The notes below the pieces were generated by a model. It was given only the letters and a program-made list of their open reading frames with translations. It ran no database searches and was not told where the DNA came from. Of a stretch of 64,000 bases of DNA, positions 4,553 to 60,793 are shown piece after piece. Source of the stretch: Octopus sinensis. Its lineage: Eukaryota. The stretch spans positions 132,494,001-132,558,000 of the forward strand of contig NC_042999.1 in assembly GCF_006345805.1 (NCBI RefSeq), read 5' to 3'. Positions within the stretch are counted from its first letter, which is position 1; each line of letters starts with the position of its first letter. The translations under genes and the position numbers were made by a program.

Positions 4553-6981
4553 TATTTCATTACATTTGCCATAAAGGCAGTACATAGAGTAAATTAGCTT
4601 TGCGGGATGGACGAGGACATTAATGAAATGAATGATAATGAAAGAAAGATGATAAGGATGGGAGAAGACAAAAAGCGCCCGCCGACTTCTGCTTCTCTAA
4701 AACATTGTTCTTTAAAACTAAATACAAAACGAGGTATTAAACCTCTTACAACTTTTACAACTTTTCAATTTTTGGACTTAACAGTCCATTACAAACAACA
4801 ACATAGTTCAATAATTACATATAATATAAATACAATACACAACGCCCCTCCTCCCAGACCTGGCTTACACTTCCCTTAGGAGTGCGCCAGCTCTAGGTCG
4901 GGGCCCCTCAAGTCGTATCTAAACATGTCCTATCAAATATAAAAAATACATTATCACTTCTCCCTTCCTCCTCTTTCCGGACCTCCAGTGAAATATCTAG
5001 CCGCCTGCAGAGCAGACCACGTTGACAGCCGGGGAGTTTAGAAAGAAAGCGAAGTGCCTATTATCAAATGTTTGTGTCACACAGTGCCACAATTTACGAC
5101 TCATCCTCAAAATAACTTGTGCCCGCATCTTCTGCCATCCTCCACACCCCTTCCAGAACCTCATCGAGTTCCGTGTTAGCGTTTCCCGGGTACAAGCGAT
5201 ATTCCTCATTGAGCTCCTCCAGCTCAAACGTCACGTCGAACGTCGTGGCCTCCACAGCTATCTGCGGAGGCCATTCGGGGTCCTGTGTGAAGGCTGAAGG
5301 TGCTCCCTTATGGTGCTTTTCTATTACCTTTTCAATCCCTCCGCCTCTATGGAAGAAGATCAATACATCGTCTTTCCCCGGGGGCGGGATATTCAATTCT
5401 TTCCTTGGCGGCACAGTTCCCGCCAACGGTGTTTCTTCTCCTGTCGGTGGCACAACCCCAACCGACGTAGTTCCGGGACATTCCGGTACTATGTCACCGA
5501 CTGCCGGCAATGTTCCGTTTCTCTTCCTCTTCCTCTTTTTTTTCTTTTCAACTGAGGGAGGGTGCGTCTCCTCCGTGGTCGGAAGATTCGCCTTTCCCTC
5601 CTCATCTCCAGGATTCCTTGGTGAGCACCCACTGTTGCTCACCTTCTTCCTCTTTCGGCCCCTGTTTGAGGAGTCCTCCGCTCCCTCGGCCGTCTTCATT
5701 CCCTCTTCTACAGGGGTTTCACTTAACTGCTCCGGGATCTTATTTTGTTCCCGGGGACAGTTTTTCTTTATATGGCCGGACTCCAGGCACCGATGACATC
5801 GGGGGGGGGGGCGACCCTCAAGTATCACCGGGTACCTGCAACCGGCCATTTTCAAAAAATCTGGAAAAACCAGATTGGCTGATTGGGTCCAAAGGGTCAA
5901 AATTGCTTTTGACCCAACCCAAATAGTCGCAGGAAGAACTTTCACATTAAGAAGCTTGGTCCCGCTGCCACCCAGACCCCGGCGGATAGTCTCCTCTATC
6001 CACTCGGGTTTTATCCCGGGTGGCAGCCCGCAGATCCAAGCTTTCGTTAACCTCTTCCCATGATACGTGGGAAGAAATAAAATTTCCTTACCCTCCAGGG
6101 GTTGACTAGCAAATTTGCGAGCCTCTTCAGGGGTGTCAAATAGCAACCACACCGTTGCATATCTGACACCCCTGGAAATGAATTTAATTGTTAGCAAATA
6201 CTCTGCCAACCCCTTTTCAATTGCCGTCTTTTCGATTAGGGCGATGGTGTCGAGTGCCTTGGAGTAGGTTCTCAACACCACCGTCCTATCTTCACGGTCT
6301 TTTAACCACTTTTCAGGCGGTATAATCTTCCTTTCCAAAATTTTGTCATTTTTCATTGCCATGTTTTTTTTTAAAATATATTCAAAATAAAACTTAAAAA
6401 GCGAGAAGAAAAAAGAAATCAAAAGAAAGTCACAATAAACAAAAAGGAGAAAGTCAAATAAAGTTTAGAAGTAAGTCAATAGTTCAGGAACACAGCAAAA
6501 AAATCTTCCGGCCATCCGGTACTCCCGGCCTAGCTTGAACCCGGAACGCCACAACTGAAACACGACATCCACAAAAATTGATATACAAATTGTTTAATCT
6601 TCGGAGGCAAAACACTCCCCCAAACAGCTGTTCTCACAATTATTAAAGTTCTTCAAAAGGCACAGTACAAGCAATATTCTCATAATTAAGTGAGAAAAAT
6701 ATTCACTCAACATAAACCGAAGACGAATACACCCCCAGACAAAAATTTTCACAATTCAGCGAGAAAAATTATTTGCCCCATGTCGACAGAACCAGAATTC
6801 TGAATAAAGTAGGAATTCCTGCCGGTACAAAAACAATTCTCAACAAAAATTCCCACTGGACCCAAAAAACAGAATCTTACCTTACAATGGAGCTTCAAAA
6901 TTTTTCAATTCGAGACGGTTTCAAAAGCATGTCTCATCTCTTTGGTGCCGAACACCACAATTATTCGCACATGCGCAGTGA
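4553..6981 (-). mobile_element. ORF1-only Tx1/L1-derived non-autonomous retroelement (HAL1-like), ~2.4 kb
   Basis: Bounded by a 13-bp direct repeat AAGCAGGCTTCTT (4540-4552) / AAGCAAGCTTCTT (6982-6994); one ORF1-like ORF; no recognisable ORF2; AATAAA formed at the 3' junction. Confidence 0.7.
5094..6362 (-). CDS. LINE (Tx1/L1-type) ORF1-like nucleic-acid-binding protein with CCHC zinc knuckle, ~422 aa from MAMKNDKIL
   Basis: Uninterrupted ORF; VILEGRPPPRCHRCLESGHIKKNCP (CX2CX4HX4C); RRM-like KAWICGLPPGIKPEWIEETI; basic low-complexity tail. ATG at 6362 preferred over the TTG start at 6422. Confidence 0.8.
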   Translation of the reverse strand: MAMKNDKILERKIIPPEKWLKDREDRTVVLRTYSKALDTIALIEKTAIEKGLAEYLLTIKFISRGVRYATVWLLFDTPEEARKFASQPLEGKEILFLPTYHGKRLTKAWICGLPPGIKPEWIEETIRRGLGGSGTKLLNVKVLPATIWVGSKAILTLWTQSANLVFPDFLKMAGCRYPVILEGRPPPRCHRCLESGHIKKNCPREQNKIPEQLSETPVEEGMKTAEGAEDSSNRGRKRKKVSNSGCSPRNPGDEEGKANLPTTEETHPPSVEKKKKRKRKRNGTLPAVGDIVPECPGTTSVGVVPPTGEETPLAGTVPPRKELNIPPPGKDDVLIFFHRGGGIEKVIEKHHKGAPSAFTQDPEWPPQIAVEATTFDVTFELEELNEEYRLYPGNANTELDEVLEGVWRMAEDAGTSYFEDES

Positions 6982-10699: not shown

Positions 10700-11560
10700 A
10701 TCATGCGTTCGGTTCGTCAATGATGCCCTCTCTCGTAGCTTCTGTATGTATTAACTCTTGAGCCACTACTGCGGAAGCTTGCGACGCTGAGGGGCATCCA
10801 CGAGAGCTGGGATGTAGGAGAAGCGTGTCTGCATACGCGGACGACGTCACCGTCATAGTGTCGAGCCACAAGCACATCAACCTGGTCGGCGAGACACTAA
10901 AAGAATACGAAGCGGTAACGGAAGCAAAAATTAACCGGGAAAAGTCAGTGGGCTTGCGGCTCGGCACCTGGAGAAGCAAGCCCATGCCGTCCAACAGCGT
11001 CTCCATCGTGGGACACTGGACAGACGGACCGGTTAAATTGCTCGGAGTTTGGTTCGGTCTGGGCCTCCAAATGGAGAAGAAGTGGGCGAAATAACGACTA
11101 GGACGGCCACTCTCACCCAGCAATGGGCCGAGAGGAAGCTCTCTCTAAAAGGTCGGGCGGAGGTGGCGAATGCGTACATCGTGTCCGTCATCGAGTACCG
11201 TCTGACCGTCGTGCCTTATCCCGACCCGACAAAGGCGTTCTATAGAGGATTAGTGGAGGGGAGGTGCGATGACGTTCTCGGGCAGAATCTGGGCGTCGAC
11301 GAGGAACACCTGACCCGCCTGTTCAGGACAACTTTCGGGTCGGGACCTATGGACAACCACCAAAGATCCCTGGTCTGGCAGTGCTATCGAGAAGCATTAC
11401 CTGTTCGGGATAAGCTCTACAGGCACGGTTTTAGACACACCGTACCAATTTGCCCGATATGTGGTCAGAGCGACGAAACCGCTCTATGGGTTTATGACGA
11501 ACGGCTGCTGTAACGTGTGAGACGAGTCCGCCTGTCGGCCGAGTCTGTTGGGGTAATTGC
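10700..11560 (+). mobile_element. Tx1/L1-type ORF2 (RT and C-terminal zinc finger) fragment, internally deleted
   Basis: SAYADDVTVIV, KINREKS, VKLLGVWFG, WAERKLSLKGR, CPICGQSDET; frameshifted. Confidence 0.85.
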
Positions 11561-11874: not shown

Positions 11875-12124
11875 TCCTGAGTGGTCGCAAGCAGACGGCA
11901 GCAAGAAAATCAATGTTGAGAATTCTTGTAGGCTGAAGAAAGGAAGGAGTGAGCATAGTGTTTAGCGCCAGTGAGAAGTGGTGGACATAATTTGGGTGAC
12001 GAGGGGAAGAGAAATATGTAAGTCAGAAGTGTCTGAGTGGACTTTAAACAAGACGAACTAACCAAGCCATGAGACAGACAGGTCAGAGGTGCATAGCTCG
12101 CTGCCGCAGTGTTCTAGAGGCGGA

Positions 12125-12170
<46 letters not shown>

Positions 12171-13550
12171 AGGAGAGAGAGAGAGAAAAGAGAGAGAGGG
12201 AGAGAAAGAGAAAGAGAGAGAGATGGTGTCATACATCTTCATTCGTCAGAGGCTGGAACAATTCTTTGATGACCAACTTTGTGTTAGTGCGTTGATGATT
12301 TTCTTGGTTGCGATCCTATGTTACCCTGTGTATACCATTTGCACTTCCAAATCTAAGAACAATATGACATTGTGGCTCTTGAGCGTTGTATTGAGTTGTC
12401 AGGGACTTCAAACCTTCTTTTATGGTGGGCCAATCTTTGGCTACGTTAAATATATATCTTCCCAGGAAAGAATCTCAGTGATATGACTGGCTAGCAGATG
12501 AAGCCTTGTTTAGGGTTTCAGGTTCATGCGCTTCATTTTTGGTTTATGGTTTACGATATTGTTTCCATGATGTGGGTTGTGATTTGGATATTGTGCTGGT
12601 GAAGGAGAAACGATATGGATGACAATATTAGAGAATGGTTTCAATGGCTCGGTTTCTGGAGTTAGTGCAAAGTCAAACGTGACATGTCTAGATTGCATAT
12701 GAATGACGTCTGGCTGCAAAAGGGTAAAGAAGAATAAAGGTTGTATATTGGTGGACGTTGCTGGAGGTGACAGCAAATACACCGTTGATGATTTGGAAGA
12801 AGAATGTTGGAAAGAAAGTCGAAATTCGGTGTGTCCAAGAGCTTATGAAATATGACCGAGCGACACGCATCAGCACACAAACGATGGTGAAATTTGATTC
12901 GATGTTAAAGCTTTAGAGTGGAGTAGCAAGAGGCTGTACCGCCAGTTGTAGCATTTATGCTTAAACTATATTCTAATGTCCTCAGGTGACTGGGTTAGTC
13001 CAAGGATCAAATTTCACCATTGGGTGTGTGCTGATGATTGTCTCTCGGCTATACTTGGACACCCCCAAACACTTGGACACCCCCAATTTCGGATGCAGGG
13101 GAAAGGAAACAAAGAGATGGAGCTATCTCTATTTTTGTTTCTATGCAAATACATATGCTGCGTGTACCTTTCCTTGAAGTCATTGGTTATCATGTCGATG
13201 TAGTGCCTTGTGATGCGTTGGGATGGTATGTGGGTGGCTCTGTAGAGTACTACCCTTGAGAAGCAGGATCCTGGTAGAGGACAGCTAGTATGGCTTCGGA
13301 AATGACAATTTTGTGTTGGTGTTTGTAGGGATATATGTTTGCGCCTACTCTAGAATGTTAATGTTAGAAGCTGTCGCAACCACACTTGCATACATGTGTC
13401 CAGAAACATAAATGTATTCCTTTTTAATTCAATTAGTGTCGCTGGAGTGTCGATCTTACTTCAGACAACACTATGTAACCTGCCTAGACCAATAGCAGTG
13501 CAGGTTCTGGCTGCCATTTTGGATTTTCGGGGTCTCTCTATACAGTAAGG
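11875..13550. repeat. Orphan copy of the upstream flank block of the sushi-gene duplication unit
   Basis: Colinear homology with 20320-21960 and 27620-28570, and in part, inverted, with 35430-36500. Confidence 0.8.
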
Positions 13551-15949: not shown

Positions 15950-16920
15950 AGTGATGTCATACCAGTCAGTCAAGTGGTTTTCTCTGGAGGACGATTAGGG
16001 TGTCTCTGTGCACAACAGCATTACCGTCCAGATGGGAATATATATATTTTGGTTGTGAAGGTTTAAATCAGCTATAAGTAAATGCATTTGCGATGAGAAA
16101 TCCTCGGTGTTGTGAGACATCTATCAGATTGCTGCTCATGTTTTAATGGTGTGAAGTATGATATTTTCCTTTTGATATAAGCAGTTCTGGTACATATTTA
16201 CTGTTGAAAGGGACAAGTTTCTCATCATTCCAAGAAAGGCACGTACGCGGTTTCAGTTCATAGATCATTGTATGTTTGTGTTGCAGTGTCAATGTTATCG
16301 GCCAAGGTCGCGAGGCTGGGGAAAATTGCAGAGGAAGGTAGGACAGTATCATTTACGTAAGAGTTAGACGGAAGGGCAAACAGGTCATAGATGATAAGAA
16401 AGAAGGAGGCAGAGGAAAACTGAATTTCAGAGTACACCAGTATTGCTTGAGTGTGAGAGAGGAAGATCTCCGTCAACATGCAGCGCGATGATGGGATGCG
16501 ATAGAATCTATCTATCAGATCCCAACGTTTAAGATTTGAGAATGCCGAAGTATATCGACTGAAAGTTTCGAAATGAGATTCACATGCCAGAATCAGTCTA
16601 AAGCTTTGCTGATATCAAGGGTAACGACATTGCTTTCTCAAATGCATTGGCGAACGATGTAGGAATTTATTCCTGTCACCCTATTGGATATGGTTCTACA
16701 GAAGTGCCCACGACCGTTGCTTGGCAACTGACGTAAGCTGATGCGATGTCTAGTGACTGAAACTGTTTGCCGTCGAAGAGATATTTTAACCAGAATAACT
16801 GGAATTGTTAAATTTAATGAGACACAGTGGCAATGCATGAGAAACGTGGCCACAGAAGCATAGAAACATGACGAAATTAGGGGAACTTTATAGCAGGGCA
16901 GAGCATACTATAAAGAAATG
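15950..16920 (-). mobile_element. Decayed CR1/jockey-type LINE RT fragment (part of the duplicated unit)
   Basis: Minus strand LDISKALD motif near 16600-16620; paralogous segments at 22230-23060, 32380-32700 and inverted at 44990-45320. Confidence 0.7.
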
Positions 16921-17244
16921 CATATATATGCATACGCACATACACGTACATACGCGCGCACGCAAGCAGACACACACACAAACACACACACGTACACACA
17001 CACAATAAATGCACACGAGTAGGCACACACCCACATATAAACATAGGGTGTTTTAAATATACACACATATACAATCACATATACAGGTATACACTTGCTT
17101 CGGCCTACTAGCCTACCTCGGACTGTCTGTTTAAGGCGAGCAGGCCGAAACTTCAAAGTCGCTGTCAACAATCTTCGTGTAGAAGTATAAAACAATCTTG
17201 AGTTATCCTTCACTGTAATGTAAAATACTTGATATAAAAACATT

Positions 17245-17500
17245 TGTATGTATGTATGTATGTATGTATGTATGTATGTATGTATGTATGTATGTATGTA
17301 TGTATGTATGTATGTATGCATGCATGCATGCATGTATGTATGTATGTATGTATGTATGTATGTATGTATGTGTGTATGTATGTGTGTATGTATGTATGTA
17401 TATATGTATATACGTATGTATGTATGTATGTATGTGTATGTATGTGTGTGTGTATGTATGTATGTATATTTGTATATATGTATATATGTGTGTATATATG

Positions 17501-17534
<34 letters not shown>

Positions 17535-17580
17535 TGTATGTATGTATGTATGTACGTATGTATGTACGTATGTATGTATT
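17245..17580. repeat. (TATG)n microsatellite
   Basis: Direct reading. Confidence 0.98.
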
Positions 17581-18282
17581 CATGTGTGCATATATGAATA
17601 TACACATATATAATATATACATATCTCTCTCTATATATACATACACACACACGCACACACACATATATACACGTATATATATATCTGTGTATATAAACAT
17701 ATGTATATACACATACATATGTAAATGCTTGTATGTATGTGAAGTTCTATATAGAAACAACGTAGCATTAAACTGAATAATTATTCAATACATTGACATA
17801 ATAAACGTTTATTAAACATTTGTAAAGACGAGTTTTATTTAATCTTTCCTTTAAGTCATATGCAGAGAAAACAAAAAGCTGTTTTAACGAAACCATCACC
17901 CGGTTTACGTAATAATCTTGACATCCAACCCATTTAAACTTAAATCAGGTTCTGTTCACATCTAATACAAAGTGTGTATGGAGTACATTTATATTTTCGT
18001 TCCAAAACATTAAAAAAAAAAATATTATCGCTCCTGCGGGGTTGAACATTGTCAAATTAAACAAAATTTGTGCATAAATATGTAAGGAAAATAATTCAAT
18101 TCCAGTAATTATAGTTTATAAAAGGTGGCGAAAATACAAAGCAGAATTGCTTCACTTACATTGCTATAGTTCTTTAGGTAAATGTGGAATATATTCCATT
18201 CCATTTCAAAACAAATTATGCATGCATATATATGTTTGTGAATACGAAAAAGCTTCAGGCACGGAGTACTTTGGTATTACAG

Positions 18283-19758
18283 TCAATAACACCTCAAACC
18301 ACAACAACTTCTATGGACTAGCCTAAAATCTATTTCTGACGTGGCATTGTTAAAATGCACAGTAACACAATTAAAGTTGTTACATGTAATTTTTTCACAA
18401 CCTATATCAAGGAAGCCAAAATATATGCAAGTATATTTTGAGGTACAAATCGACGCTGATGAATATTTTTTGTAATGAAGCATGCCCTTTTTCAGCGAAA
18501 TATAATTTGTATTAATATATGAACAGATTGGTCGCGGACTCAAGACACCATTATTACAAGTAACATTTCCGTTAGAATTTCTCGTGTAATTGGCGCGACA
18601 TGAATAAGTAATATTCGTATTTTGTGGAATTAAGCTACCAAACGGAAGATATTGCAAATTGTCTGAATAACGGTAGCTATATATGCCAAATTCGGGTAAC
18701 AGTTGACAGCTCTTCACACACCTTGGAAGTGTTCCATTCCAAGTTCCATTTTCTAAACAGGTCCTTTTAGAATCTCCCAACAATGTTTCTCCTGCTGAAC
18801 AGCTGTATTCAATAACTGAAGAATTATGTAACAAAATAAAGTTTAATCCACTTTGTGTCTCAATTGTACACGATTTTCTGCACTGCATGTCTGGGTACCA
18901 TTTACCTAACAAGCATTGAACGGCACCAAACGCAACTGGAATGAAAGATCGTTTGCAAGAATATATCACTTTTCTTCCTTCATTAATTAATGTTCTGGGT
19001 TTTAAAATTGTATCTTCAGAAATAGTCACCACTCTGCCAGCAATTTCTGGTACAAAGCATTTCAACGTGCAGACAGGTGTTGCAAAGTTCCATTCACCAT
19101 CTTGAAGACAAGTTAACACTGATTCACCTTTCAGGTTATATGGTTTTGAGCAACTGAAAGAAATGGTTTCGTTAATTTTAACTTCATTTGTATTGTTAAC
19201 ACTGCCATTTTTCGGTGGATGCGGTGGGAGACATTTTGTAGTTTCACAAACTGGTGGTAGAGACGTCCACTGCTGATTTTCTTGACAACGTATTGTAGTG
19301 TTTCCTCGCATAGAATAACCAGAAAAGCATGAGAAGTAAACAACAGAGTTATATGTGTATGCAACATTGGTTAAGATACTGTGAGCAGGTTTATGAAAAA
19401 TTGGGCAGGCTGTTAACTTACATTTTATATCTTGATACTTCCATTTACCATTCAGACAAACAACGTCAGTCGTATTCCGTTGGCTTGCTCGAAAATAGCG
19501 ATTGCACTTTTGTTCCAGATATATTTTTTGTTCTTCCCACTTTATGATATATTGTATTCTACCGTTGTGTAATTTTGGTAAAGGACCACAGTTTAAGAAA
19601 TTTATCACTTGTTTAAGAAGCCACGGAGAAATGATTTTATCTGATGCAGTGGTATTATCATATTCCGACAAAATATTTTGCATAATATTAAATGCATTAT
19701 TTTCACTTTTCACTGTGAATATAATTAAAGAAAGAAAATAGAAAGATCTGAATATCAT
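18283..19758 (-). CDS. Secreted six-sushi (CCP/SCR) protein with C-terminal 8-Cys domain, copy 1 (491 aa, intronless, intact)
   Basis: ATG start, hydrophobic N-terminus MIFRSFYFLSLIIFTVKS; six 4-Cys modules (aa 57-113, 118-171, 176-230, 234-293, 297-347, 351-412), with the Trp between Cys3 and Cys4 in the first five; many NxS/T sequons; no TM segment; terminal C-x5-C-x9-C-x4-C-x4-C-x20-CC-x3-C. Confidence 0.9.
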   Translation of the reverse strand: MIFRSFYFLSLIIFTVKSENNAFNIMQNILSEYDNTTASDKIISPWLLKQVINFLNCGPLPKLHNGRIQYIIKWEEQKIYLEQKCNRYFRASQRNTTDVVCLNGKWKYQDIKCKLTACPIFHKPAHSILTNVAYTYNSVVYFSCFSGYSMRGNTTIRCQENQQWTSLPPVCETTKCLPPHPPKNGSVNNTNEVKINETISFSCSKPYNLKGESVLTCLQDGEWNFATPVCTLKCFVPEIAGRVVTISEDTILKPRTLINEGRKVIYSCKRSFIPVAFGAVQCLLGKWYPDMQCRKSCTIETQSGLNFILLHNSSVIEYSCSAGETLLGDSKRTCLENGTWNGTLPRCVKSCQLLPEFGIYSYRYSDNLQYLPFGSLIPQNTNITYSCRANYTRNSNGNVTCNNGVLSPRPICSYINTNYISLKKGMLHYKKYSSASICTSKYTCIYFGFLDIGCEKITCNNFNCVTVHFNNATSEIDFRLVHRSCCGLRCY

Positions 19759-24319: not shown

Positions 24320-24975
24320 TTATATATATTTAAATGTTAAACTTCGGGAAAGTTTTTCAGATTTTACAGTTCCAGTGATAGATTGGATTTGTAGTTTTCG
24401 AATTAGCTTTCTCCTTTCTGGCTTTGAAAAGCCTATTTTCTCAAGATTGTTATTCAGGCAGTGTGTTACATATCCCAAGGCCCCAATAATTACAGATATA
24501 AACCTGAACTCGTAATCTGAACAGAGTAACTGCAGATTTCTCAATAGTTCAGCATAGTTGTTCTCTTTTTCACTGATCTTCAGCTTTATGTTAACGTCAG
24601 CTGGGCAGCTAATTTCCACAACTGTGCACAGTTTCTCTTCTCTATCCCAACTCATTATATCAGATCTATTGTGCTTGCATTTTATTGAGGTCTTCACTGG
24701 TATGTTCCACCAGTATTCCCTTTTATTATGAGTGGATATGGCTTCTACCATATTGTGGATTTTTATTTCTTTGTCCTCGGGATTATCCTTCCGACGGATT
24801 TCATTATAGGGTGTCCTAGCTACAACGTCATGACTCATCGGTAGATATATCGTGATGACATTTTCGGACAACTACTTATGATGTGGATAATATCTTCAGC
24901 GTGAACTCCACAAAGTCTGCGTCGGTTGTCACATTTTACGGCGTTTCCTGCATCTCTATCCCTTTTGTGCATCAG
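24320..24975 (-). mobile_element. RLE-type LINE 3' fragment (second family)
   Basis: CRLCGVHAEDIIHIISSC zinc knuckle, HDVVAR, RSDIMSWD...EISCPADVNIKLKISEK; homologous to 59870-60115. Confidence 0.8.
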
Positions 24976-25741
24976 GTATGTATGTATGTATGCATGTATG
25001 TATGTATGTATGTATGTATGTATGTATGTATGTATACACACATATTTTCATCAAGTTCTATATAAATAAATATATTTATATCAAGTTCTATATAAAAACA
25101 ACCTGGCATTAAACTTAATAATTATTCAATACTTTATGGCACAATACGCGTCTGTTAAACATTTATAAAGATGTGTTTTACCTATAGTTTCGCATCCGTC
25201 ATATCTAGAGCAAGCAAGGCTTTTCTAACGAAACCATCGCCAGATTTATGTAATAATGTTTACTTCACACTCGTTGAATCTTAAATATGGTTCTATTCAC
25301 TTATAGTACACAGCAGAGTACATGCACATTGTTTCAAAATTACAAGCAACATTCATATATTATCACTTCTGCATGGTTGAATACTGTCAAAATTTATGGA
25401 TATGTATGTAATTAAAATAATAGTTTTCCAGCGATATACAGTGTGATAAAACGTGTGAGACTGAAGGTTCATATTCATGAAACAAAATAGAAACGCCAAC
25501 AACAGAATCAAGGGGAATATATGAAAGATTATTTTAATTTTAAAAATATGTCTTCAATTAGTGATGCCTTTTTAAAATAATCAGACACCTCGCGAAAATA
25601 CAAAATAAGATTGTTTCACTTATATTGTTATAGTTCTGTAGTTAAATATAGAATAGGCTCCATTCCATTTAAGACAAATTATGAATGTATATATATATCT
25701 TTTTGTATAAGAGATAGCTTCATGTTGGGAGTACTGTGATA

Positions 25742-27125
25742 TTAGTATGTATTACACTTCAAAGCGCAACAATCTCCAAAGTAATCCATAAAATTTATTT
25801 CTGACGTAGCATTGTCAAAATGCACAGTAACACAAAGTAGTTGCATGTTATCTCTTCACAACCTGCATCAAAGTAAACCAAAATATTTGCAAGAATAGTT
25901 CGCTGCACAAACAGACATTGGTGAATATTCTTCGTACTGAAGAATATTCTTTTTATTCAGCGATATATTTCTACATGAACAAATTGGATTGGGATTCAAG
26001 ACACCATTATTACAAGTAACATTTTCGTAAGAATTCCTCGGGTAATAACGGCGACATGAATAAGTAATTTGCGTAATTTGTAGAATTGAGCTGCCAAACG
26101 GAAGATATTGTAAAATGTGTGAATATCGGTAGCTATATATGCCAAATTCGGGTAACAGTTGACAGCTCTTTACACACCTTGGAAGTGTTCCACTCCATGT
26201 TCCATTTTCTAAACAGGTCCTTTTAGAATCTCCCAACAATGTTTCTCCTGCTGAACAGCTTTATTCGACAACTGAAGAAATACGTGACAAAATAAAATTT
26301 ATTTCACTTCGTGCCTCAATTGTACCCGATTTTCTGCACTGTATGACTGGGTACCATTTACCTGACAAGCATTGAACGATTCCAAACGCAACTGGAATGA
26401 AGGATCGGTTGCAAGAATATATCACTTTTCCTCCTTCATTGATTAATGTTCTGGATTTTAAAATTGTACCTTCAGAAATAATCACCACTCCGCCAACATT
26501 TTCCGGCACAAAACATTTCAACGTGCAGACAGGTATTGGAAAGTTCCATTCCGTCTTGAAGACAAGTTAATACTGAATCATCATTCAGATTATATGGTTT
26601 TGAGTAACTGGTTTCGTTAATTTAACTTCATTTGTATTGTTTATATTGCCAATTTTCAACGTGCAGACAGGTGTTGCAAAGTTCCATTCACCATCTTGAA
26701 GACAAGTTAACACTGATTCACCTTTCAGGTTATATGGTTTTGAGCAACTGAAAGAAATGGTTTCGTTAATTTTAACTTCATTTGTATTGTTAACACTGCC
26801 ATTTTTCGGTGGATGCGGTGGGAGACATTTTGTAGTTTCACAAACTGGTGGTAGAGACGTCCACTGCTGATTTCTTGACAACGTGTTGTAGTGTTTCCTC
26901 GCATATAATAACCATAAAAGCATGTGAAATGAACAACAGAGTTATATGTGTATGCAACATTGGTTAAGATACTGTGAGCAGGTTTATGAAAAATTGAGCA
27001 GGCTGTTAACTTATATTTTTTATCTTGATACCTCTATTTACCATTCTGACAAACGTTGGCTTGCTCGAAAATAGCGGTTGCATTTTTGTTCCAGACATAT
27101 TTTTTGTTCTTCCCATTTTACGATT
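25742..27125 (-). pseudogene. Sushi-array gene copy 2 (pseudogene)
   Basis: Colinear with copy 1 but lacks ~340 bp including ATG and signal peptide, has several frameshifts and a ~135-bp tandem duplication of the CCP3 end; terminal DCCALKCNTY* at 25742. Confidence 0.9.
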
Positions 27126-27220
27126 CTACAACTACATCTCAGAGAAATATTTTTCAGTTATATACTTACTTTGAAATCGAGGCTTATGACATTGCTTAGG
27201 GAGAGAATAAGAGAGATGGA

Positions 27221-27260
27221 TATTTATAGTAGGAGGGGTTTGAAGATTAGTTGATTGGCT
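27221..27260 (-). promoter_or_regulatory. CCAAT/TATA block upstream of copy 2
   Basis: TATTTATA at 27221-27228 and ATTGG at 27254-27258 on the plus strand, same spacing as copy 1. Confidence 0.5.
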
Positions 27261-27388
27261 ATTTTAATTTGAATAGTAAAATGTGGCTTATATTATAGCT
27301 GAACAGTAGAAGTAGTGTTGCACAGCAGTAAGCATGTTTGCATAAATTGCATGCATTAGATTGGACACACACACACACAACACACACA

Positions 27389-27433
<45 letters not shown>

Positions 27434-27579
27434 TAAACAAATACATACACTCACACACTCTACATTTGGTGAAACATAGGACCTGGATGATTAAAATATC
27501 AATATGACCAGGGGACATAGTATAAATCCACAGATTGCTGAGAAAATCTAGTGCGCATGACTATCTGTAGGATAAAATC

Positions 27580-27938
27580 TGTACGTATGTGTTTTTTATT
27601 GTGTTGGTTTGAAAGAAGTTTCTGAGCTTTTGCAAGTTCACAGCGACAGGAAAATCCTTGTTGAAAATTCCTGTAGGATGAGGAATAGAATAGCAGAGCA
27701 TAATGTTTAGTGTCGGTTAGAAATGATGGACATAATTTGGGTGATGAGGGGAAGCGAAATACATAAATCTGAAGTGTTTGAGTGGACGTAAGTCGAGACG
27801 AACCAACCAGGCCGTAATACAGGTCGATTAGAGGTGTATGGCTAGCTTTAGTTGCGTTTTATATAGAGAGAGGGGGTGGAGACATAGAGGGAGAGAGAGA
27901 GGAGCGTAGATGCAGAGAAACAGAGAGAGAGAATGAAT

Positions 27939-27988
<50 letters not shown>

Positions 27989-28570
27989 GAGAGAAACATG
28001 ATGGTGTGATACATCTCGTCCAGTCATCAGATTGGAAGAATTGTTTAGTGGACGTTTTTGGAGGTGACAGTAAATACGCCGTTGATGATTTACAGAAAGA
28101 ATGATGAAAAGCAAACCGAAACTGGGGGTGTCCAAGAGTTAATAATGTATGTTCGAGCGACACCCATCATCACACGCTCGATAGTGAAATTTGACACGAT
28201 TTTACCGCTCTACAGTAGCGTAACTAGATGATGTACCACCAGCGGGAGCACTTGTTCTTAAACTATTTTCTAGTACCCTCAGGTGACTGAGTTAGCCCAA
28301 GTGTCAAATTTCGTCATGTGTTGTGTGTGGATGGTTGTCTCTCGGCCATACTTTATAAACTTTTGGACACCCCTAATTTCGGCTGTAGAAGAAACTAGAC
28401 AAATAGATGGAATTGTCTCTTTCCATGCATCTAAGCGAATACATATGCTGCATGTACCATTCCTTGAAGGCATTGGTCATCATGCCCGTGTAGTGCCTTG
28501 GGATTCGATGAGATGGCGTGGGAGTGGGTCTTTGGAGTACTACAATTGAGAGGCAGAATCATCTTAGAGG
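27580..28570. repeat. Upstream flank block of copy 2
   Basis: Homologous to 20290-21700 with an internal deletion. Confidence 0.75.
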
Positions 28571-35429: not shown

Positions 35430-36500
35430 ACCACGTGCGAGGGTCTGTGTGTAAGTCTGAATAGGGAGTAAGGATATATTTTGGCAAACTCGAGAGCTGT
35501 TCTTGTCGGCATGCAACACTGTAGATCGGTGCCTTCAGGTCAAAATTTAACATCGGATATATATTGATGGGCGTCTCTTTGACATACGCTATAAAATTTT
35601 GGACAACCATAATTTCGATTTTACTTTCAACATTCTTCTTCCAGAACAACATTGGTGTAATTGCTGCCAATTCCAACAACTTCCACTACAATACAAGCTT
35701 TATTCCTCTTAAATCTTTCCCTGTCTGACATCATTCATATGCAATGTAAAAACCTCACGCCAAACTTGCATTAACTCCATAAACAGAGACATAGAAACCA
35801 TTCTTTAATGTTGTCAAAATCACTTCAAATAATTTCGTAAAATACACACTAAACATGAAGGACAAAGCTAATAGTTTCAACTACTCGGCCATTCACATCA
35901 CTGAGAATCTCTCTCAGGGAAAGTAATCTTTGGTATAGTCAAAATTACATCACTAAGATTGGCCCGCTGGTAAAGAAAATCTTTCAGACCCTAACAAGGG
36001 CCTAACTACTTACAAGGCACAACTGAAAGCCATAATGTAATATTGTCTCTGCAGATAAGACGGTGTTGATAGCGTGCATACGAAATTACAAGATCACTTC
36101 CAAGAAGATGATCAACCGACTGACCATCGTGACATTCTTCAAACCACTGACAAACGAACACGAGGTGTAACTCCGTCTCTCTACCTTCACGTTCCTCTCA
36201 CTCTCTCTCCCTCCCACTCCCTCTCTCCCCCTCTCTCTCACGCGACTACAGTGAGCTTTACTTCTTTGACTTGCTTGCCTTCTTTACAGTCTGGCTTGTT
36301 GATCTCGTTCTGCCTCCACTCAGGAACTCCCGACCCATGTATTTTGCTTCCTCTCATCACCCAAATTATGTCTACCATTCATACACGGCACTAAACATTA
36401 TGCTGAGTCATTCCTTTAGTCAGCCTAAAAAAAGTGTGGACAATATTTCTCCTATCGCCGTCAACTTGCGACCACTCAGTGCTATCTATCAGATCAATAA
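35430..36500. repeat. Inverted, more diverged upstream flank block of copy 3
   Basis: Reverse-complement similarity to 20290-21400 (e.g. TCATCACCCAAATTATGTC versus GACATAATTTGGGTGATGA). Confidence 0.7.
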
Positions 36501-36890
36501 AGTAACAAACATGTATGAAATTTACTCAATTTACTCAACTTTACACATACAGAGTTTTCATCTTGTGGTAATTTATGCGTACTTGATTTTCTCTGCATTC
36601 TGTGCATTTATTTTATTTGCCCTGTGCACATTAATATTTTTAATTTTCAAACCATATGTTTCAACATATGTAGTGTGTGTGTGTGTATGTGTGTGTGTGT
36701 GTGTGTGTGTTTATGTGTGTGTGTGTGTGTTGTGTGTGTGTGTGTGTGTGTGTAGCTAATTCAACTATGTAATTTATGCAAATACGCTTACTACTGTACT
36801 ACATGACTTGTGCTGTTCTGCTATAATCTAAGCCACATCATAATATTAAAATTAAAATAACCAGCCAGCAAATCTTTAAGCCCCACCTCT

Positions 36891-36898
36891 TATAAATA
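36891..36898 (+). promoter_or_regulatory. Putative TATA box of copy 3
   Basis: TATAAATA in the position homologous to copies 1 and 2; the CCAAT position is altered (CCAGCCAGCA). Confidence 0.45.
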
Positions 36899-37109
36899 TT
36901 CTCTCCCTAAGCAATACCATATGCCTTAATTTTAAAATTAAAGAAGTGTATATACGAAAATATTTTTCTAAGATACACTTGTGGAATCGACCAACTGCCT
37001 ACTAATTCGACTGTAAAGGACTTACTGAAAATATAAAACTAACAGCTATTCAATCGGCAATATAGTTTTGTAAATTTTTCACGTAAAGTTTACCATCAAA
37101 ATTCAGAAA

Positions 37110-38593
37110 ATGATATGCAGATCTTTCTATTTACTTTTTTTAATCATATTCACTGTGAAAAGTGAAAATAATGCATTTAATAGTATTGTGCAAAATATTT
37201 TGTCGGAATATAGTAATACAAGTTCAATCGACAAAAACTTTACTCCTTGGTTTTTTAAACAAATGATAGATTTCTTAAACTGTAGCCCTTTACCGGAATT
37301 AAACAACAGTAGAATACAATATATCATAAAATGGGAAGAACAAAAGATATCTCTGGAACAAAAATGCAACCGATATTTTGAAGCAAGCCGAGGCAATACG
37401 ACCGAGATTGTTTGTCGGAATGGTAAATGGAAGTATCAAGATATAAAATGTAAGTTAACAGCCTGCCCAATTTTTCATAAACCCGCTAATAGTTTCATGA
37501 CAAATGTTGCATATACATATAACTCTGTTGTTTACTTCTCATGCTTTTCTGGTTATTTTATGCGAGGAAACACTACAATACGTTGTCAAGAAAATAAACA
37601 GTGGACGTCTCTCCCACCAGTTTGTGAAACTACAAAATGTCTGCCACCGCATCCACCCAAATATGGCAGTGTTAACAATACAAATGAGGTTGAAATCTAC
37701 GGATCAATTTATTTCTTTTGTTCAAAACCATATAATCTGAAAGGTGAATCAGTGTTAACTTGTCTTCAAGACGGTCGTTGGAATTTTCCAACACCTGTAT
37801 GCACTTTGAATTGTGTTGTGCCTGAAATTGCTGGCAGAGTGGTGAATATTTCTGAAGGTACAATTTTAAAACCAAGAACCTTAATCAATGAAGGAGGAAA
37901 AGTGATATATTCTTGCAAACGATCTTTCATTCCTGTCGCGTATGGATTCGTTCGATGCTTTTCAGGTAAATGGTACCCAAACCTACAGTGCAGAAAAAGG
38001 TGTAAAATTGAAAAACTACATGGATTAAATTTTATTTTGTCACATAATTTTTCAGTTATTGAATATAGCTGTCCAGCAGAAGGAACTTTGTTCGGAGATT
38101 CTAAAAGAACCTGTTTAGAAAACGGACATGGAGTGGAAAACTTCCAGTTTGTGTTAAGAATTGCCAACTGTTACCTGAGATTGGTTTATATAGCTACCGA
38201 AATGAAGAAACGCAGCGATATCTTCCGTTTGGCAGCAGAGTCCCAGAAAATACGACAATTACCTATTCATGTCACTTTAATTATTCGAAGAACTCTAACA
38301 AGAGTGTGACGTGTACTAACGGTATTTTGACACCAAAACCAAGCTGTTACTATAAGAATAAAGTATACGTGAATAGAGCTAATACCCTTATGTTCAGAGA
38401 TACATCATCAATGCGTGTTTGTGGCGGAAATATTACTTGCAAATTTTTTGGGTACGGTGACGGATTTTGTAAATGGATAACGTGTAACGACTTGTTTCAT
38501 TGTGTTAGTGTACGTTTGAATAATGAAACATCTGAAGTATCTTTTGTGCCTTACTTTGGAACATGTTGCGGTTTGGCGTGCCATAAATCGTAA
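37110..38593 (+). pseudogene. Sushi-array gene copy 3, full length except one 1-bp deletion at ~38126 (recent pseudogene or assembly error)
   Basis: Frame 1 matches copy 1 up to CLENG; restoring one A (GGACA to GGAACA) gives TWSGKLPVC...CQLLPEIGLYSY...PKPSC...CCGLACHKS* with no further stop. Confidence 0.88.
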
Positions 38594-39493
38594 TATCAAA
38601 GTACTACCTATCATAAGCTTTATCCTACATAAAAGATATATATGCATGCGTAATTTGTCTTAAATGGAATGGAACATATTTCATATTTAACTACAGAACT
38701 ATAACACTGTAAGTGAAACAATCCTATTTTGTATTTTTACCAGGTTTCTTATTTGTTTTATATTCCCATAACTAACAGAAGGCATAATTATAAAATTAAA
38801 ATAATATTCAATCTTTAAAATAAGTGCATTTTACTTGATTGTGCTGTTGTTGGTGGTGATGGTGTTTTCTATATTTAAATGATCCTTCAATCTCACACGT
38901 TTTATCACTCGAGATATTGCTGGAAATGAACTATTTTCATTACATACTTATGCACAAATTTTGTTAAATTTCACAACATTCAACCACGCAGGGGCTATAG
39001 AATATAGATTTTGTTTGATGTTTTGAAACGAAAATATAATTGTGCCCCATACTCGTTTTGTATTAGAAGTGAATAGAAAGGGATTTAAGCGTATCCGAAT
39101 GTAACGTAAAGATGATTACGTAAACCGATCCATGGTTTGGTTAAAATAGCTTTTTGCTGAGGGTACGCATGAACAGATTGAGAATAAATTCCAAATATCA
39201 GGTTAAACTGCATTCAGCACGATGTTTCGATGCTGTATTGTGCACATTCATGTTTTTGCTCAATAGTTTTCAGTAAGATATATATACGTATACATCCATC
39301 CATCCATACATATATATATATATAGTGTTAATCCAAACAAGAAAACACAAAAAAACACAACAGCGCGAGGACGTGGAACAAATATAGTATTATTGGACGC
39401 TCAGGAAACATAGGAGAAGGAAAGATCCAGAGAAGGGAAGACAGAGGGAAAAAAAATCGCCAACGGTACACACGAGGTGTGTGTGTGTGTGAA

Positions 39494-40606: not shown

Positions 40607-40744
40607 ATTTTCATATTTTTATTACTTGCTCTGGCTGTTTTTTTTATGAATATGATGAATCTTTATTAGAAATCATTCTTTCTCTCTTTTTGGATCTCTC
40701 AAAAAGTTTGAATTGCTCTCTTTTGAACTTATTTTGTCCCACAT

Positions 40745-41410
40745 ATGTATGTATGTATGTATGTATGTATTATGTATGTATGTATGTATGTATGTTGTAT
40801 GTATGTATGTATGTATGTAGTATGTATGTATGTATGTATGTATGTATGTATGTATGTATGTATGTGTATGTATGTATGTATTATGTATGTATGTAGTATG
40901 TATGTATGTATGTATGTATGTGTATGTATGTTGTATGTATGTATGTATGTATGTATGTATGTATGTATGTATGTATGTATGTATGTATGTATGTATGTAT
41001 GTATGTATGTATGTATGTATGTATGTATGTGTGTGTGTATGTATGTATGTATGTATGTATGTATGTATGTATGTATGGTATGTATGTATGTATGCATGCA
41101 TGCATGCATGTATGTATGTATGTATGTATGTATGTATGTATGTAGTATGTATGTATGTATGTATGTATGTATGCATGCATGCATGTATGTATGCATGCAT
41201 GTATGTATGTATGCATGTATGTATATATGCATGTATGTATGTATGCGTGTATATGCATGTATGTGTATGCATGTGTGTATGTATGTGTCTGCATGTATGT
41301 GTATGCACCCCAATACTCCAATACCCACAGTTTATACACAGGAAGAGTTGTTAGTAGACTGTTACGTAGATTTGTGTGTGTGTATGTGTGTGTGTGTGTG
41401 TGTATGTGTG
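40745..41410. repeat. (TATG)n/(TG)n compound microsatellite
   Basis: Direct reading. Confidence 0.98.
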
Positions 41411-41789
41411 TAAAATAAACAGATAGATGGTACATAGGTAATACAGAAAGACAAGCACGCACATACATACAACTCGCCTTGTATAAACTCATAAGAAAAA
41501 ACGTTGAAAGCCATCGCTAAATTCAAAACGGTCAAAGTGTATAGTATAAATACAATAAGACGTTATAATACATTAATATATTAAAAATATACTACATATA
41601 GTATAATATAGGCGGCTCCTTAGCAATTGAAACTTAAAGGCAAATTAATAAACAAGGGTACAAAATAGTAACGGCAGTCGCTAGAAATAAGAGTCAAAAC
41701 GACTCAAAATAGCCACACAGAGCACTAACGTCATGAATTGGCGGAAAGCAGGGAAGCAAGCTAAAGTACCTTTCCTCCGATTTCCGTCA

Positions 41790-47494: not shown

Positions 47495-48120
47495 TTTAAA
47501 GCGTTTAGAGTGGAGTAAAAAGCCTATAGAATTGGTTCCTAGAGCAGTGGAAGAATGTTATTTTCTTGGTCGGGTTATCCTTTACCTTATTTCGGACCAC
47601 TGACCGAGTATACATGTGGAGACAGCCAAAAGAAGCATTTGGGCCAGACTGCCTTCTTGCAACATGGAGGAGGATCTGTGATGAACTAGGGAGCGAGCTA
47701 TATCTTGGAAATCCGCCGGCCCAATGGTTTCCCTTCATGGCAGAATAAATAGTCAAGACTATTTAAGCATTTTATCTGATTAAATTTATCATATGGTTGC
47801 GGAACTGTTTCTGGAGGGAAACGCAATCTTTCAGGATGATAATGCACCAATTCACACAGCTAGAGTTGTTACTGAATGGTACGAGGAACATTCTAGTGAA
47901 GTTGAACGTCTTATCTGGCTACCACAGTCCCCAGATCTCAATATTATTGAACATTTATGGTGCATTTTAGAAAAGCAAGTAAGGAGTCGATATCCTCCAC
48001 CATCATCACTACAAGAATTGGAGACTGTATTAGCTGAAGAATGGACAAAAATTCCATTGGAAACAATTCAAACTTTGTACGAGTCCATACCTTGTAGAAC
48101 TATTTTGCCCCCCCCCGTAT
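47495..48120 (+). mobile_element. Tc1 transposase 3' fragment
   Basis: IFQDDNAPIHTAR...WLPQSPDLNIIEHLW (DD34E region) and TIR-like ending CTATTTTGCCCCCCCCGTA. Confidence 0.9.
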
Positions 48121-48138
48121 ATAATATATGTATATATA

Positions 48139-48198
<60 letters not shown>

Positions 48199-48234
48199 AT
48201 GTGTGTGTATCTGTCTGTCTCTGTGTGTGTATGT

Positions 48235-48420
48235 GTTTGTCCCCCCCACCAACATCGCTGGTGTGTTTACGTCTCCGCAATCTAGCGGTTCGGCAAAAGG
48301 AATCGATAGAATAAGTACTGAGCTTACAGAGAATAAGCCCTGGGGTCGATTTGCTCGACTAAAGGCTGTACTCCTGCGTGCTCGCAGTCAAATTCCTGAA
48401 ACAAGTAAACGAGCAAAAGA
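48235..48420 (+). mobile_element. SINE family B 3' half
   Basis: Matches 9810-9990. Confidence 0.75.
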
Positions 48421-51484: not shown

Positions 51485-51562
<78 letters not shown>

Positions 51563-52625
51563 GTGTGTATATATATACGAACATACATGCACATACATAG
51601 TCACACACACATACAAAGAGTCATACATAACCACATCATACATATGTAATGCATATGCAAACGTACATAATGAATATCGATTACATACACACACACACAC
51701 ACACACAAACAAACATATATATATACATATGCTTAATACATATATGTATACATAATACATAAATGCATACATGCATACGCACACACACATATATATATAT
51801 ACATGTACATAGTACATGTATGTATACATAATACATAATACATAGATGTATACACACATACATACATAGATAAATACATACATACATACATACATACATA
51901 CATACATACATACATACATACATACATACATACATACATACATACATACATAAATACATACATACATACATACATACATACATACATACATACATACATA
52001 CATACATACATACATACATACATACATACAAAAGTGAAACCTCAGAAATAAATATGACTGCATATCATCGGGAAGTCATTTATGGTTTTGTAGCTGTGGA
52101 GATGAATAATGATAACAGCCTAAGTAGAGCAGTATATTCTAGGTCACTGACTACTGCTACGTTGCATTATATGTTTATTATACAGGGCCAGAGGCCACCA
52201 ACAAACTAACTACACCATGCGTAAAAGGGATAAATTTAAAATGTTTGCTTCTCAACTACTTTGCCCCGGGTTCGGTCACACTGCGTTGCAGCTTGTGCGA
52301 GTGCCTTCTATTATAGACACGCATCAACCAAAACTATGTGAGTGGATTTGGTAGACGGAAAGTGATAGAAACCCGTCGTATGTACGTATGCATGTATGTG
52401 CACTTTGGTGTCTTATATGTACCTACCTACCTACCTACCTACCGACGTACCTACCTACACCTACCTACCTACCTACCTACCTACCTACCTACCTACCTAC
52501 CTACCTACCTGCCTATCTACCTACCTACCTACCTACCTACCTACCTACCTACCTACCTACCTACCTACCTACCAACCAACCAACTAACTAACCTACCTAC
52601 CTACCTACCTACCTACCTACGTATC
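51485..52625. repeat. (CATA)n (51485-52030) and (CCTA)n (52420-52625) microsatellites
   Basis: Direct reading. Confidence 0.97.
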
Positions 52626-59869: not shown

Positions 59870-60115
59870 ATGATAAACATCTGGAAAATTTTACACATTT
59901 TTACAGTTTCAGTGATGGATTGGATCTGCAGTCTTCAATTAAGCTTTCTTCTTTCTGGATTTGAGAAGCCTAATTTCTCAAGATTCGTACTTAGTGTGTA
60001 ACACATCCCAGTGCCTCAATAGTTACATAGACCTGAACTTGTAATCCAGGCAGCGTAGCAGTAGATTCTTCAAAAGTTCATCATAGGTATTTTCTTTTTC
60101 GCTGATCTTCAGCTT
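59870..60115 (-). mobile_element. RLE-type LINE 3' fragment (same family as 24320-24975)
   Basis: IKLKISEKENTYDELLKNL...YKFR; abuts (TATG)n. Confidence 0.75.
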
Positions 60116-60793
60116 TATGTATGTATGTATGTATGTATGTATGTATGTATGTATGTATGTATGTATGTATGTATGTTGTATGTATGTATGTATGTATGTA
60201 TGTATGTGAGTATGCATGTATGTATGTATGTATGCATGTATGTATGTATGTATGTATGTATGTATGTATGTATGTATGTATGTATGTATGTATTATGTAT
60301 GTGTGTATACATGTATGTATGTATTATGCATGTATGTATGTATGTATGTATGTATGTATGTATGATTGTATGTATGTATGTATGTATTATGTATGTGTGT
60401 ATGCATGTATGTATGTGCATGTGTAGGTATGCAGGTGTGTGTATGCAGGTATGTGTATGTATGTATGTATGAATGTTTGTTGGTATGTATGTATGTATGC
60501 ATGCGTGCATGAATGCGTGTATGTATGTATGTATGTATGTATGTATGTATGTATGTATGTATGTATGCATGCGTGCATGAATGCATGTATGTATGTATGT
60601 ATGTATGTATGTATGTATGTATGTATGTATGTATGTATGTATGTATGTATGTATGTATATATGTATGTATGTATGTATAAAATGCAGGTGTGTGTGTGTA
60701 TGTATGTATGAAATGCAGGTGTGTGTGTATGTATGTATGTATGATTGTATGTATAGATCAATGAATGTACGTATGCATCCATGTATCTATGTT

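Follow-up and report, generated by a model that had tools for sequence, protein, structure and literature searches.

Several invertebrates possess diversified families of immune-type recognition proteins, among them the FREPs of snails, the 185/333 proteins of sea urchins and the VCBPs of protochordates, the last of which are mucosal. In the peptides of cone snails a conserved precursor carries a hypervariable, disulfide-rich mature part. Sushi modules, also called CCP (complement control protein) modules, are found in the cephalotoxins SE-CTX and DECA-CTX, proteins of about 1000 aa from the posterior salivary gland that combine LDL-A, Sushi, TSP-1 and EGF modules. Cephalopods have no adaptive immunity and, to our knowledge, their specificity in recognising microbes, mates or self is little understood. 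Here we describe a family of octopod genes, copies of which lie in a stretch of 64,000 nucleotides of the Octopus sinensis genome (assembly GCF_006345805.1, contig NC_042999.1, positions 132,494,001 to 132,558,000; hereafter the window). An earlier examination of the letters of this stretch, referred to below as the sequence-only reading, had pointed to an unassigned terminal domain with eight cysteines shared by these copies. We find that the family is built as a rod of CCP modules bearing a small, positively selected tip, and on balance we consider that it probably serves recognition, most likely in mucosal immunity.

Domain organization of the protein

The gene named copy A is intact and could be compared over its entire length with a second gene in the window, copy C. 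The two genes and the parts of copy A are as follows:

18283..19758, minus strand: copy A, an intact single-exon gene of 491 aa plus stop, taken from the list of open reading frames (ORFs)
19591..19758, minus strand: signal peptide (aa 1–18, by eye) and family-specific N-terminal stretch (aa 19–56)
18718..19590, minus strand: stalk modules CCP1–CCP5 (aa 57–347), subject to purifying selection, with four Cys and a Trp per module
18523..18717, minus strand: CCP6 (aa 348–412), atypical, without Trp and of intermediate variability
18454..18522, minus strand: hypervariable linker (aa 413–435) from CCP6 to the first tail Cys
18286..18453, minus strand: eight-Cys core (aa 436–491, about 57 residues), a conserved scaffold with hypervariable loops
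37110..38593, plus strand: copy C, the same gene with one frameshift, its tail at 38348–38590 and its stop codon at 38591–38593

The stalk (aa 57–412) belongs to the Sushi/CCP superfamily (Pfam PF00084, E=2.3e-36, 124.4 bits against a cut-off of 20.7). Pfam detects the module in four stretches, and the six modules counted by the sequence-only reading are visible as 4-Cys units of about 60 aa, with a Trp in CCP1–5 and none in CCP6. The N-terminal stretch (aa 19–56) is conserved in the family alignment and matches nothing in Pfam. The product is predicted from its sequence to be a secreted, heavily N-glycosylated protein, about 54 kDa in mature form with a pI of 8.9; it carries 13 N-x-S/T sequons, one of them inside the conserved tail motif F-N-N-A-T-S-E.

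The segment 18283–18522 (minus strand), in which the terminal domain had been proposed, consists of the stop codon (18283–18285) and the codons of aa 413–491 of copy A (18286–18522). The domain is real: its cysteines follow the pattern C438-x5-C444-x9-C454-x4-C459-x4-C464-x20-C485C486-x3-C490, which is conserved from Octopus to Argonauta and recurs in copy C with a spacing of x5 between Cys4 and Cys5. The identities between copies A and C that had been estimated by eye, about 80, 60 and 40%, are close to the measured values of 81% over aa 1–338, 63% in CCP6 and 41% in the tail; within the first segment the signal peptide and N-terminus are 71% identical and the modules CCP1–5 75–91%. Likewise, the motifs that had been noted to survive in the tail (the cysteines, FG, NNxTSE and CC) are the ones conserved across 14 family members.

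Throughout the family six of the tail cysteines are invariant and the rest are conserved in at least 90% of members, and every member has an even number of them. Together with the eight cysteines, an FFGYR-like motif and a V-x-V-x-F-N-N-x-T-S-E-I hairpin containing an N-x-T sequon are kept from Octopus to Argonauta. The cysteines probably form four internal disulfides. In P0007 (family members are designated by P and a number) Cys4 and Cys5 have both been lost, to Tyr and His, and its near-twin P0019, on the same O. sinensis contig (loci L005 and L009), retains both; this joint loss suggests a Cys4–Cys5 bridge.

Selection on the terminal domain

Sliding comparison of nucleotide sequences revealed a valley of identity exactly at the tail in every pair of genes, with better conservation on either side of it, in the stalk as well as in roughly 1 kb of non-coding 3′ flank. 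Between copies A and C identity drops to 0.48–0.59 in the linker, the lowest in the gene. The tail is indeed the most variable part of the protein, as had been proposed, and owes this to selection, not to decay.

Among close pairs (tail dS<0.3, with substitutions in the tail), the Nei-Gojobori method (NG86) gave a tail ω of 1.3–6.8 in 10 of 11, compared with 0.35–0.62 in the stalk, and the excess of tail over stalk was significant in 9 of 10 (Fisher p 0.001–0.03). For P4/P5 the tail ω of 2.45 reflects 37.8 non-synonymous and 4.2 synonymous differences, and for P7/P19 the value of 6.8 reflects 13.5 and 0.5, respectively. The eleventh pair, the orthologues P8/P21, has a tail ω of 0.88 (p=0.058).

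Codon models (GY94-type, F3x4) were then fitted with our own implementation on a neighbour-joining (NJ) tree for each partition, the per-module runs using branch lengths scaled from M0. Under M0, ω is 0.85–1.10 in the tail, 0.38–0.40 in CCP6 and 0.19–0.52 in CCP1–5 and the N-terminus (0.49 for the stretch aa 19–56). When M2a was compared with M1a, the likelihood ratio test (LRT) statistic for the tail was 61.7 with 13 genes and 37.8 with Octopus sequences only and gappy columns removed; the Cys core alone gave 48.0 (p=4e-11). In each data set 32–41% of tail sites were assigned an ω of about 4–5. No such signal was present in CCP1–4, CCP6 or the N-terminus (LRT 0–2.7). Since 14 data sets simulated under the fitted M1a yielded an LRT of at most 3.0, against the observed 37.8, the pipeline does not create the signal at this level of divergence. 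In the low-divergence clade P4/P5/P6/P16/P17, where the alignment is unambiguous, ω reaches 1.93 for the tail taken as one unit (p=0.027 against 1) and 0.42 for the stalk. Thus dN/dS in the tail is not well below 1, in line with the sequence-only reading. Synonymous divergence does rise towards the 3′ end for certain pairs of paralogues, A/C among them, yet dN/dS is not low.

Sites with a high posterior probability of ω>1 lie in the linker (418–435, many of them above 0.9), in the loops Cys2–Cys3 (451–453), Cys3–Cys4 (455–458) and Cys4–Cys5 (460–463), at residue 466 after Cys5 and at residues 480–484 ahead of the CC pair. Sites in the conserved or neutral classes include the cysteines, the hairpin and F447-G448, which belongs to an FFGYR motif in most members. 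The pattern is that of a fixed scaffold bearing variable surface loops.

Comparison with flanking DNA points in the same direction. Divergence (K) of the last 240 coding nucleotides exceeds that of the first 600 nucleotides of flank in 9 of 10 pairs; it is 0.154 against 0.068 for P8/P21 (p=7e-4) and 0.149 against 0.067 for P3 and copy C (p=1e-3). Neutral divergence between P8 and P21 is about 0.06–0.07, a value on which the distant flanks and the dS of the stalk (0.064) agree; the tail dN is 0.153. With sites of ω>1 concentrated in one module, a conserved scaffold and birth-and-death of tandem copies, the family belongs to the class of genes under diversifying selection.

Outside the tail, the sole hint of positive selection is a weak yet significant signal in CCP5 (aa 294–347; 18718–18879, minus strand), with an LRT of 11 and about 2% of sites, one or two in number, at ω about 9.

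Gene copies and gene conversion

Two further elements related to copies A and C were found in the window:

about 25745–27124, minus strand: copy B, a decayed pseudogene delimited by tblastn alignments, codon view and sliding identity
32731..32814, minus strand: isolated CCP2 fragment (tblastn E=1e-4; blastn 87.5% over 64 nt)

At the protein level copy A agrees with O. sinensis XP_036357238.1 (P0001) at 100% identity, save for a block of 101 aa that is spliced out in the NCBI annotation. In that 390-aa entry, aa 113–213 (CCP2 and most of CCP3) were taken as an ‘intron’ from an uninterrupted ORF; the other family members are all single-exon genes and the ‘intron’ is probably an annotation artefact. 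In copy C a 1-nt deletion near 38124–38127 shifts the frame at aa 338, both pieces being otherwise open, and the orthologous gene of O. bimaculoides, P0003, is intact; copy C could be a very young pseudogene, or the deletion could be an assembly error. Copy B lacks its 5′ end and contains several stops and frameshifts as well as an inserted tract. Its tail had been credited with the eight-Cys pattern apart from one disrupted Cys codon, as a third copy beside A and C. For A and C the pattern stands; the tail of copy B is in a worse state, with a +1/−1 frameshift pair that produces two in-frame TGA codons. The CCP2 fragment is what remains of a further copy.

Gene conversion has left clear traces at the locus. 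A tract of 222 nt in copy B (26654–26875, minus strand) is 100% identical to copy A (19062–19283, minus strand; coding nt 476–697) and directly adjoins the decayed sequence native to copy B for that part of CCP3 (about 26516–26653); it represents a recent gene-conversion or insertion event into the pseudogene. Copies A and C are 0.84–0.96 identical at the nucleotide level across most of the CCP1–5 stalk, and their dS is 0.2–0.35 in CCP1–5 against 0.66–0.99 in CCP6 and tail. Elsewhere in the family, P16 shares about 1 kb of 3′ flank with P6/P17 at 98–100% identity, the tails differing by K=0.21, and P7 and P19 are mosaics. Conversion thus homogenises stalk and flanks, and the tail either escapes it or converted tails are removed by selection.

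Because of this homogenisation, the contrast between 80% and 40% identity among paralogues partly reflects different effective ages of the two parts. This raises the question of whether the tip has any special function at all, or is merely under relaxed constraint, its contrast to the stalk being made by conversion that resets stalk and flanks. Conversion is real, 3′-end dS is higher in several paralogue pairs, and the domain-average ω is near 1 both over the whole tree and in P8/P21, all of which would fit. However, relaxed constraint does not account for cysteines, FFGYR and hairpin that are conserved from Octopus to Argonauta, nor for frames that are open in at least 13 genes; about a third of the sites have an ω of 4–5 with LRT values of 38–62 against a simulated maximum of 3, the low-divergence clade reaches 1.93, and in P8/P21, for which the 21 kb sampled contain no neighbouring paralogue that could act as a conversion donor, divergence of the tail is still about double that of the flanks and double the stalk dS. 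We therefore regard this explanation as improbable. The conclusion on selection stands since ω>1 and the orthologue comparison are independent of conversion, and the locus offers a clean case of a single-exon gene in which conversion and diversifying selection work on neighbouring parts.

The duplication reaches beyond the gene itself, the copies being similar from roughly 700–1900 nt before the ATG to about 400–600 nt after the stop (23758–14283 against 36315–39156 and 25016–28503); an additional repeat of 1.7 kb is shared with 11878–13546. The window is rich in microsatellites and transposon debris, and its GC content varies between about 0.28 and 0.49. The debris between the gene copies includes ORFs at 5094–6422 (minus strand), 11049–11513 (plus), 47793–48314 (plus), 56269–57108 (plus) and 24320–24871 (minus). 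Among them, two match zf-RVT, the zinc-binding region of reverse transcriptases, and a third encodes part of a DDE_3 transposase; Pfam recognises neither the 183-aa ORF nor the one of 442 aa, which contains a CCHC-like knuckle. Microsatellite arrays of the (CATA/TATG)n type and others occupy 16900–17780, 40670–41500, 51485–52063, 60115–60570 and further places, and yield spurious ORFs of 150–220 aa in several frames. Strong excursions of GC skew occur near 14–16 kb, 42–44 kb and 50–52 kb of the window.

Distribution of the family

The family was searched for with a protein query, with a full-length profile and, in a scan of 1.84 billion representative proteins, with a hidden Markov model (HMM) of the tail. 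All three retrieved family members only from O. bimaculoides, O. sinensis, O. vulgaris and Argonauta hians; the taxon sample is thus three Octopus species and Argonauta, and absence from other cephalopods means absence from the protein collections searched. Family proteins are about 483–495 aa long and share one architecture. The next-best match of the full-length profile is a generic Sushi protein of the brachiopod Lingula (E=2e-18, 26% identity), and the tail occurs in this family alone according to the HMM scan. Two other proteins from that scan, P0013 and P0014, were rejected as tandem-repeat artefacts (8 and 4 short stretches, respectively). A word-index homology search with the tail alignment gave zero matches, the family itself included; because the exhaustive HMM scan did recover the family, this null is treated as a limit of the index.

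All 13 intact genes examined with their flanks are single ORFs. Most family genes sit in tandem clusters: a segment of about 290 kb on O. bimaculoides CM046603.1 holds P0003, P0005 and P0004, and in O. sinensis several members share contigs. P0008/P0021 form a lone orthologous pair on another chromosome, with no neighbouring paralogue within the 21 kb sampled. The family also includes pseudogenes and orphan-tail fragments (L001 5354–6135, L003 12595–12823, the frameshifted P0015 and the 95-aa P0012). The first of these, in O. bimaculoides, lies upstream of P0003 in opposite orientation and is decayed as much as copy B; it mirrors the position of copy B upstream of copy C, and the arrangement is therefore older than the split of the two Octopus species.

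Two of the fragments consist of the tail only. The copy at L003 12595–12823, 1.1 kb downstream of P0005, has an intact Cys frame, and P0012 is annotated in O. bimaculoides as a protein of 95 aa. Such orphan tails may be remnants of partial duplications, or donors for tail conversion.

Structure of the terminal domain

The sequence-only reading had found no name for the fold of the tail, and none was supplied by Pfam, the PDB, the HMM scan of 1.84 billion proteins or Foldseek. In searches with the whole protein Pfam gave nothing credible in the tail, and with 14 tails at E≤10 it returned no consistent match, only scattered ones in single members; AZUL (E=0.0036) and the other weak matches were each found in 1 of the 14 and were discarded as chance. 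Neither phmmer nor a profile search of the tail matched any PDB sequence. Two AlphaFold2 models were built, one from 10 sequences (pLDDT 54.6, strands only) and the other from 14 sequences with the P0004 tail as query (pLDDT 65.6, four strands); in both, the linker (aa 413–435) has a pLDDT below 50. Compared by Foldseek with the PDB and BFVD, the models reached an E of about 1 at best, and TM stayed at or below 0.34. The tail is accordingly predicted to be all-beta, with a fold that cannot be named and, the models being of low-to-moderate confidence, cannot be claimed as new. It is a candidate new domain family, possibly with a new small fold, and as such would be useful for structural genomics; it may also be useful as a compact, mutation-tolerant binding scaffold.

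Several known domains were considered and rejected. A degenerate seventh CCP finds no support in the composition of the tail (eight Cys, no Trp) or in Pfam, where none of the 14 tails has a Sushi match at E≤10; aligned by hhalign with the family's own CCP profile, the tail profile scores a probability of 0.3% and is therefore not a recognisable CCP. The Ly6/uPAR three-finger fold had been our initial guess from the C-terminal CC-x3-C. It has no Pfam match at E≤10 and no Foldseek match, the latter test being weak by itself with models of moderate confidence. The spacing of the tail moreover leaves one long loop (x20) instead of three, and the suggested Cys4–Cys5 bridge is absent from three-finger pairing, which is C1–C3, C2–C4, C5–C6 and C7–C8. 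Somatomedin B and WAP, eight-Cys domains with CC at positions 6–7, differ in spacing and likewise have no Pfam match at E≤10.

The position of the tail brings to mind an oligomerisation or anchoring module such as the C-terminal core of C4b-binding protein (C4BP), which is likewise located at the end of a CCP chain; this core is an amphipathic helical structure with two Cys that form inter-chain bridges. Conservation of the scaffold residues would agree with such a role, but the tail is predicted to be all-beta rather than helical, its even number of cysteines argues for internal bridges, and positive selection is not what one expects of an assembly interface, which should be conserved. We consider this role very improbable.

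Possible functions of the family

We favour the view that the protein serves extracellular recognition and that its tip would be the end that binds ligands, a surface caught up in an evolutionary chase. The family changes through duplication in tandem, through decay into pseudogenes and through gene conversion, which maintains the likeness of stalks and flanks and leaves the tip diverged; recurrent positive (diversifying) selection drives apart the flexible hypervariable linker and the loops between the cysteines. The CCP rod might present the tip, or engage a conserved host partner, for instance a thioester or complement-like protein. The setting would most likely be mucosal immunity of the skin, in an arms race with microbes or parasites. 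The family is a concrete and testable candidate for a diversified recognition system, so far known from octopods only.

Mucosal immunity is put first because one paralogue has been reported in skin mucus: P0019 (UniProt A0A6P7TXA6) is listed in the skin-mucus proteome of O. vulgaris, in a list that is rich in thioester proteins, mucins and hemocyanin (PMC10138644 Table S2). A literature search by UniProt accessions returned nothing in main texts, and searches for octopus together with sushi, P-selectin or salivary gland returned only the skin-mucus paper and papers on the cephalotoxins, which have a different architecture.

Several points weigh against this interpretation. The identification of P0019 in mucus consists of one unique peptide and one peptide-spectrum match with 3% coverage, and the sample also held many intracellular proteins or cell debris (PMC10138644 Table S2). 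As to selection, the codon models were not those of PAML or HyPhy and relied on a separate NJ tree per partition; recombination inside the tail and uncertain alignment of the loops could inflate site-model signals, and deep branches are saturated (tree length of 7–12 substitutions per codon). The tail ω of P8/P21, 0.88–0.93, does not exceed 1 by its own dS and is above neutral only relative to flanking DNA, and the 3′ flank may be a constrained untranslated region or a converted tract, in which case it understates the neutral rate of the paralogues. Finally, the predicted structures are of low-to-moderate confidence, so that a new fold is not established.

The same signature, that is positive selection in one small domain, lineage restriction and rapid birth and death of genes, would also be expected of proteins for reproductive or conspecific signalling, in which the tip would serve gamete, egg-coat or mate recognition and diverge through sexual conflict or species specificity. 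CCP-chain proteins do occur in sperm–egg binding, the mouse sperm protein sp56/ZP3R being one such chain. Nevertheless, the sole protein-level record comes from skin mucus, and the many paralogues per genome suit an immune-type repertoire more than a single lock-and-key pair; a reproductive role is possible, though unlikely.

That a conserved rod with a variable disulfide-rich end is the pattern of recognition molecules or toxins had been suggested by the sequence-only reading. The conserved rod and diversifying tip are confirmed, recognition is what we infer from them, and for a toxin no evidence was found. If the family were part of the venom, the Cys-rich tip would be a warhead diversifying against targets in prey or predators. 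A conserved Cys frame with hypervariable loops and fast coding divergence is the classic pattern of toxin genes, and here the loops are hypervariable within a conserved frame and the coding region diverges faster than its flanks; Sushi-containing venom proteins (SE-cephalotoxin, DECA-CTX) also exist in cephalopods. The cephalotoxins, however, come from decapodiforms and differ in architecture from a protein of six CCPs and a tail only. Furthermore, small toxin precursors do not resemble a 54-kDa glycoprotein built on a conserved rod, no processing site between rod and tip is seen in the sequence, and the salivary-gland literature searched does not mention the family. A venom function is thus distinctly improbable, and the weakest in a ranking that, on a thin basis, places mucosal immune recognition as most likely, followed by reproductive or conspecific recognition.

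A more speculative idea concerns self-recognition. Octopus suckers reportedly avoid grasping the animal's own arms, a behaviour associated with Nesher et al. 2014. It is conceivable, if far-fetched, that the proteins are a surface label secreted by the skin, individually or specifically variable, which would act as the skin cue behind this behaviour, with a tip read by the contact chemoreceptors of the suckers; the orphan tails (L003 12595–12823 and P0012) might then act as donors for cassette-like gene conversion. The idea draws only on the record from skin mucus, on the fact that the protein is secreted and on its diversifying tip, and the literature on sucker and skin self-recognition yielded behavioural papers only.

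Comparison with known systems

Family members carry database names such as ‘complement factor H-like’, ‘P-selectin-like’, ‘SVEP1’, CUB-and-sushi and clotting factor C. These are automatic, misleading labels that imply no orthology, and they provide no basis for inferring a complement system in octopus. With factor H, C4BP and DAF the octopus proteins share a secreted chain of CCPs (four Cys per module, with Trp in five of six) and clustering of paralogues, but neither the eight-Cys tail nor the N-terminal stretch has a counterpart there. The searches with the family retrieved only octopod proteins and then the generic Lingula Sushi protein; with this as the closest match outside the family, no named vertebrate protein, complement regulators included, is an orthologue. 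The C4BP core differs in kind from the tail, the models of which contain no helix of four or more residues and the eight cysteines of which are even in number. Ly6/uPAR proteins such as CD59 resemble it in being small, all-beta and equipped with eight Cys and an adjacent CC near the C-terminus; they differ in that the spacing of the octopus tail gives one long loop and the loss of Cys4 and Cys5 in P0007 misfits three-finger pairing. The modular architecture of the cephalotoxins is not that of the 491-aa octopus protein, in which Sushi alone was found.

The closest parallels are in evolutionary behaviour. Like the FREPs, VCBPs and 185/333 proteins, the octopus family is a lineage-specific, secreted multigene family with conserved and hypervariable parts and with non-synonymous change concentrated in the latter; the domains involved differ completely, being Ig, fibrinogen or chitin-binding ones there and CCPs with an eight-Cys module here. 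With the cone-snail peptides, compared here in pattern only, the tail shares a fixed Cys frame, selected loops and better-conserved neighbouring precursor or non-coding sequence, the difference being that the octopus module stays on a glycoprotein rod of 400 residues with no propeptide cleavage site evident. The family resembles both the recognition families and the disulfide-rich peptides in behaviour and is homologous to neither. Its stalk belongs to the known Sushi/CCP superfamily, and what is new is the combination: secreted CCP-chain proteins that end in an undescribed, positively selected domain.

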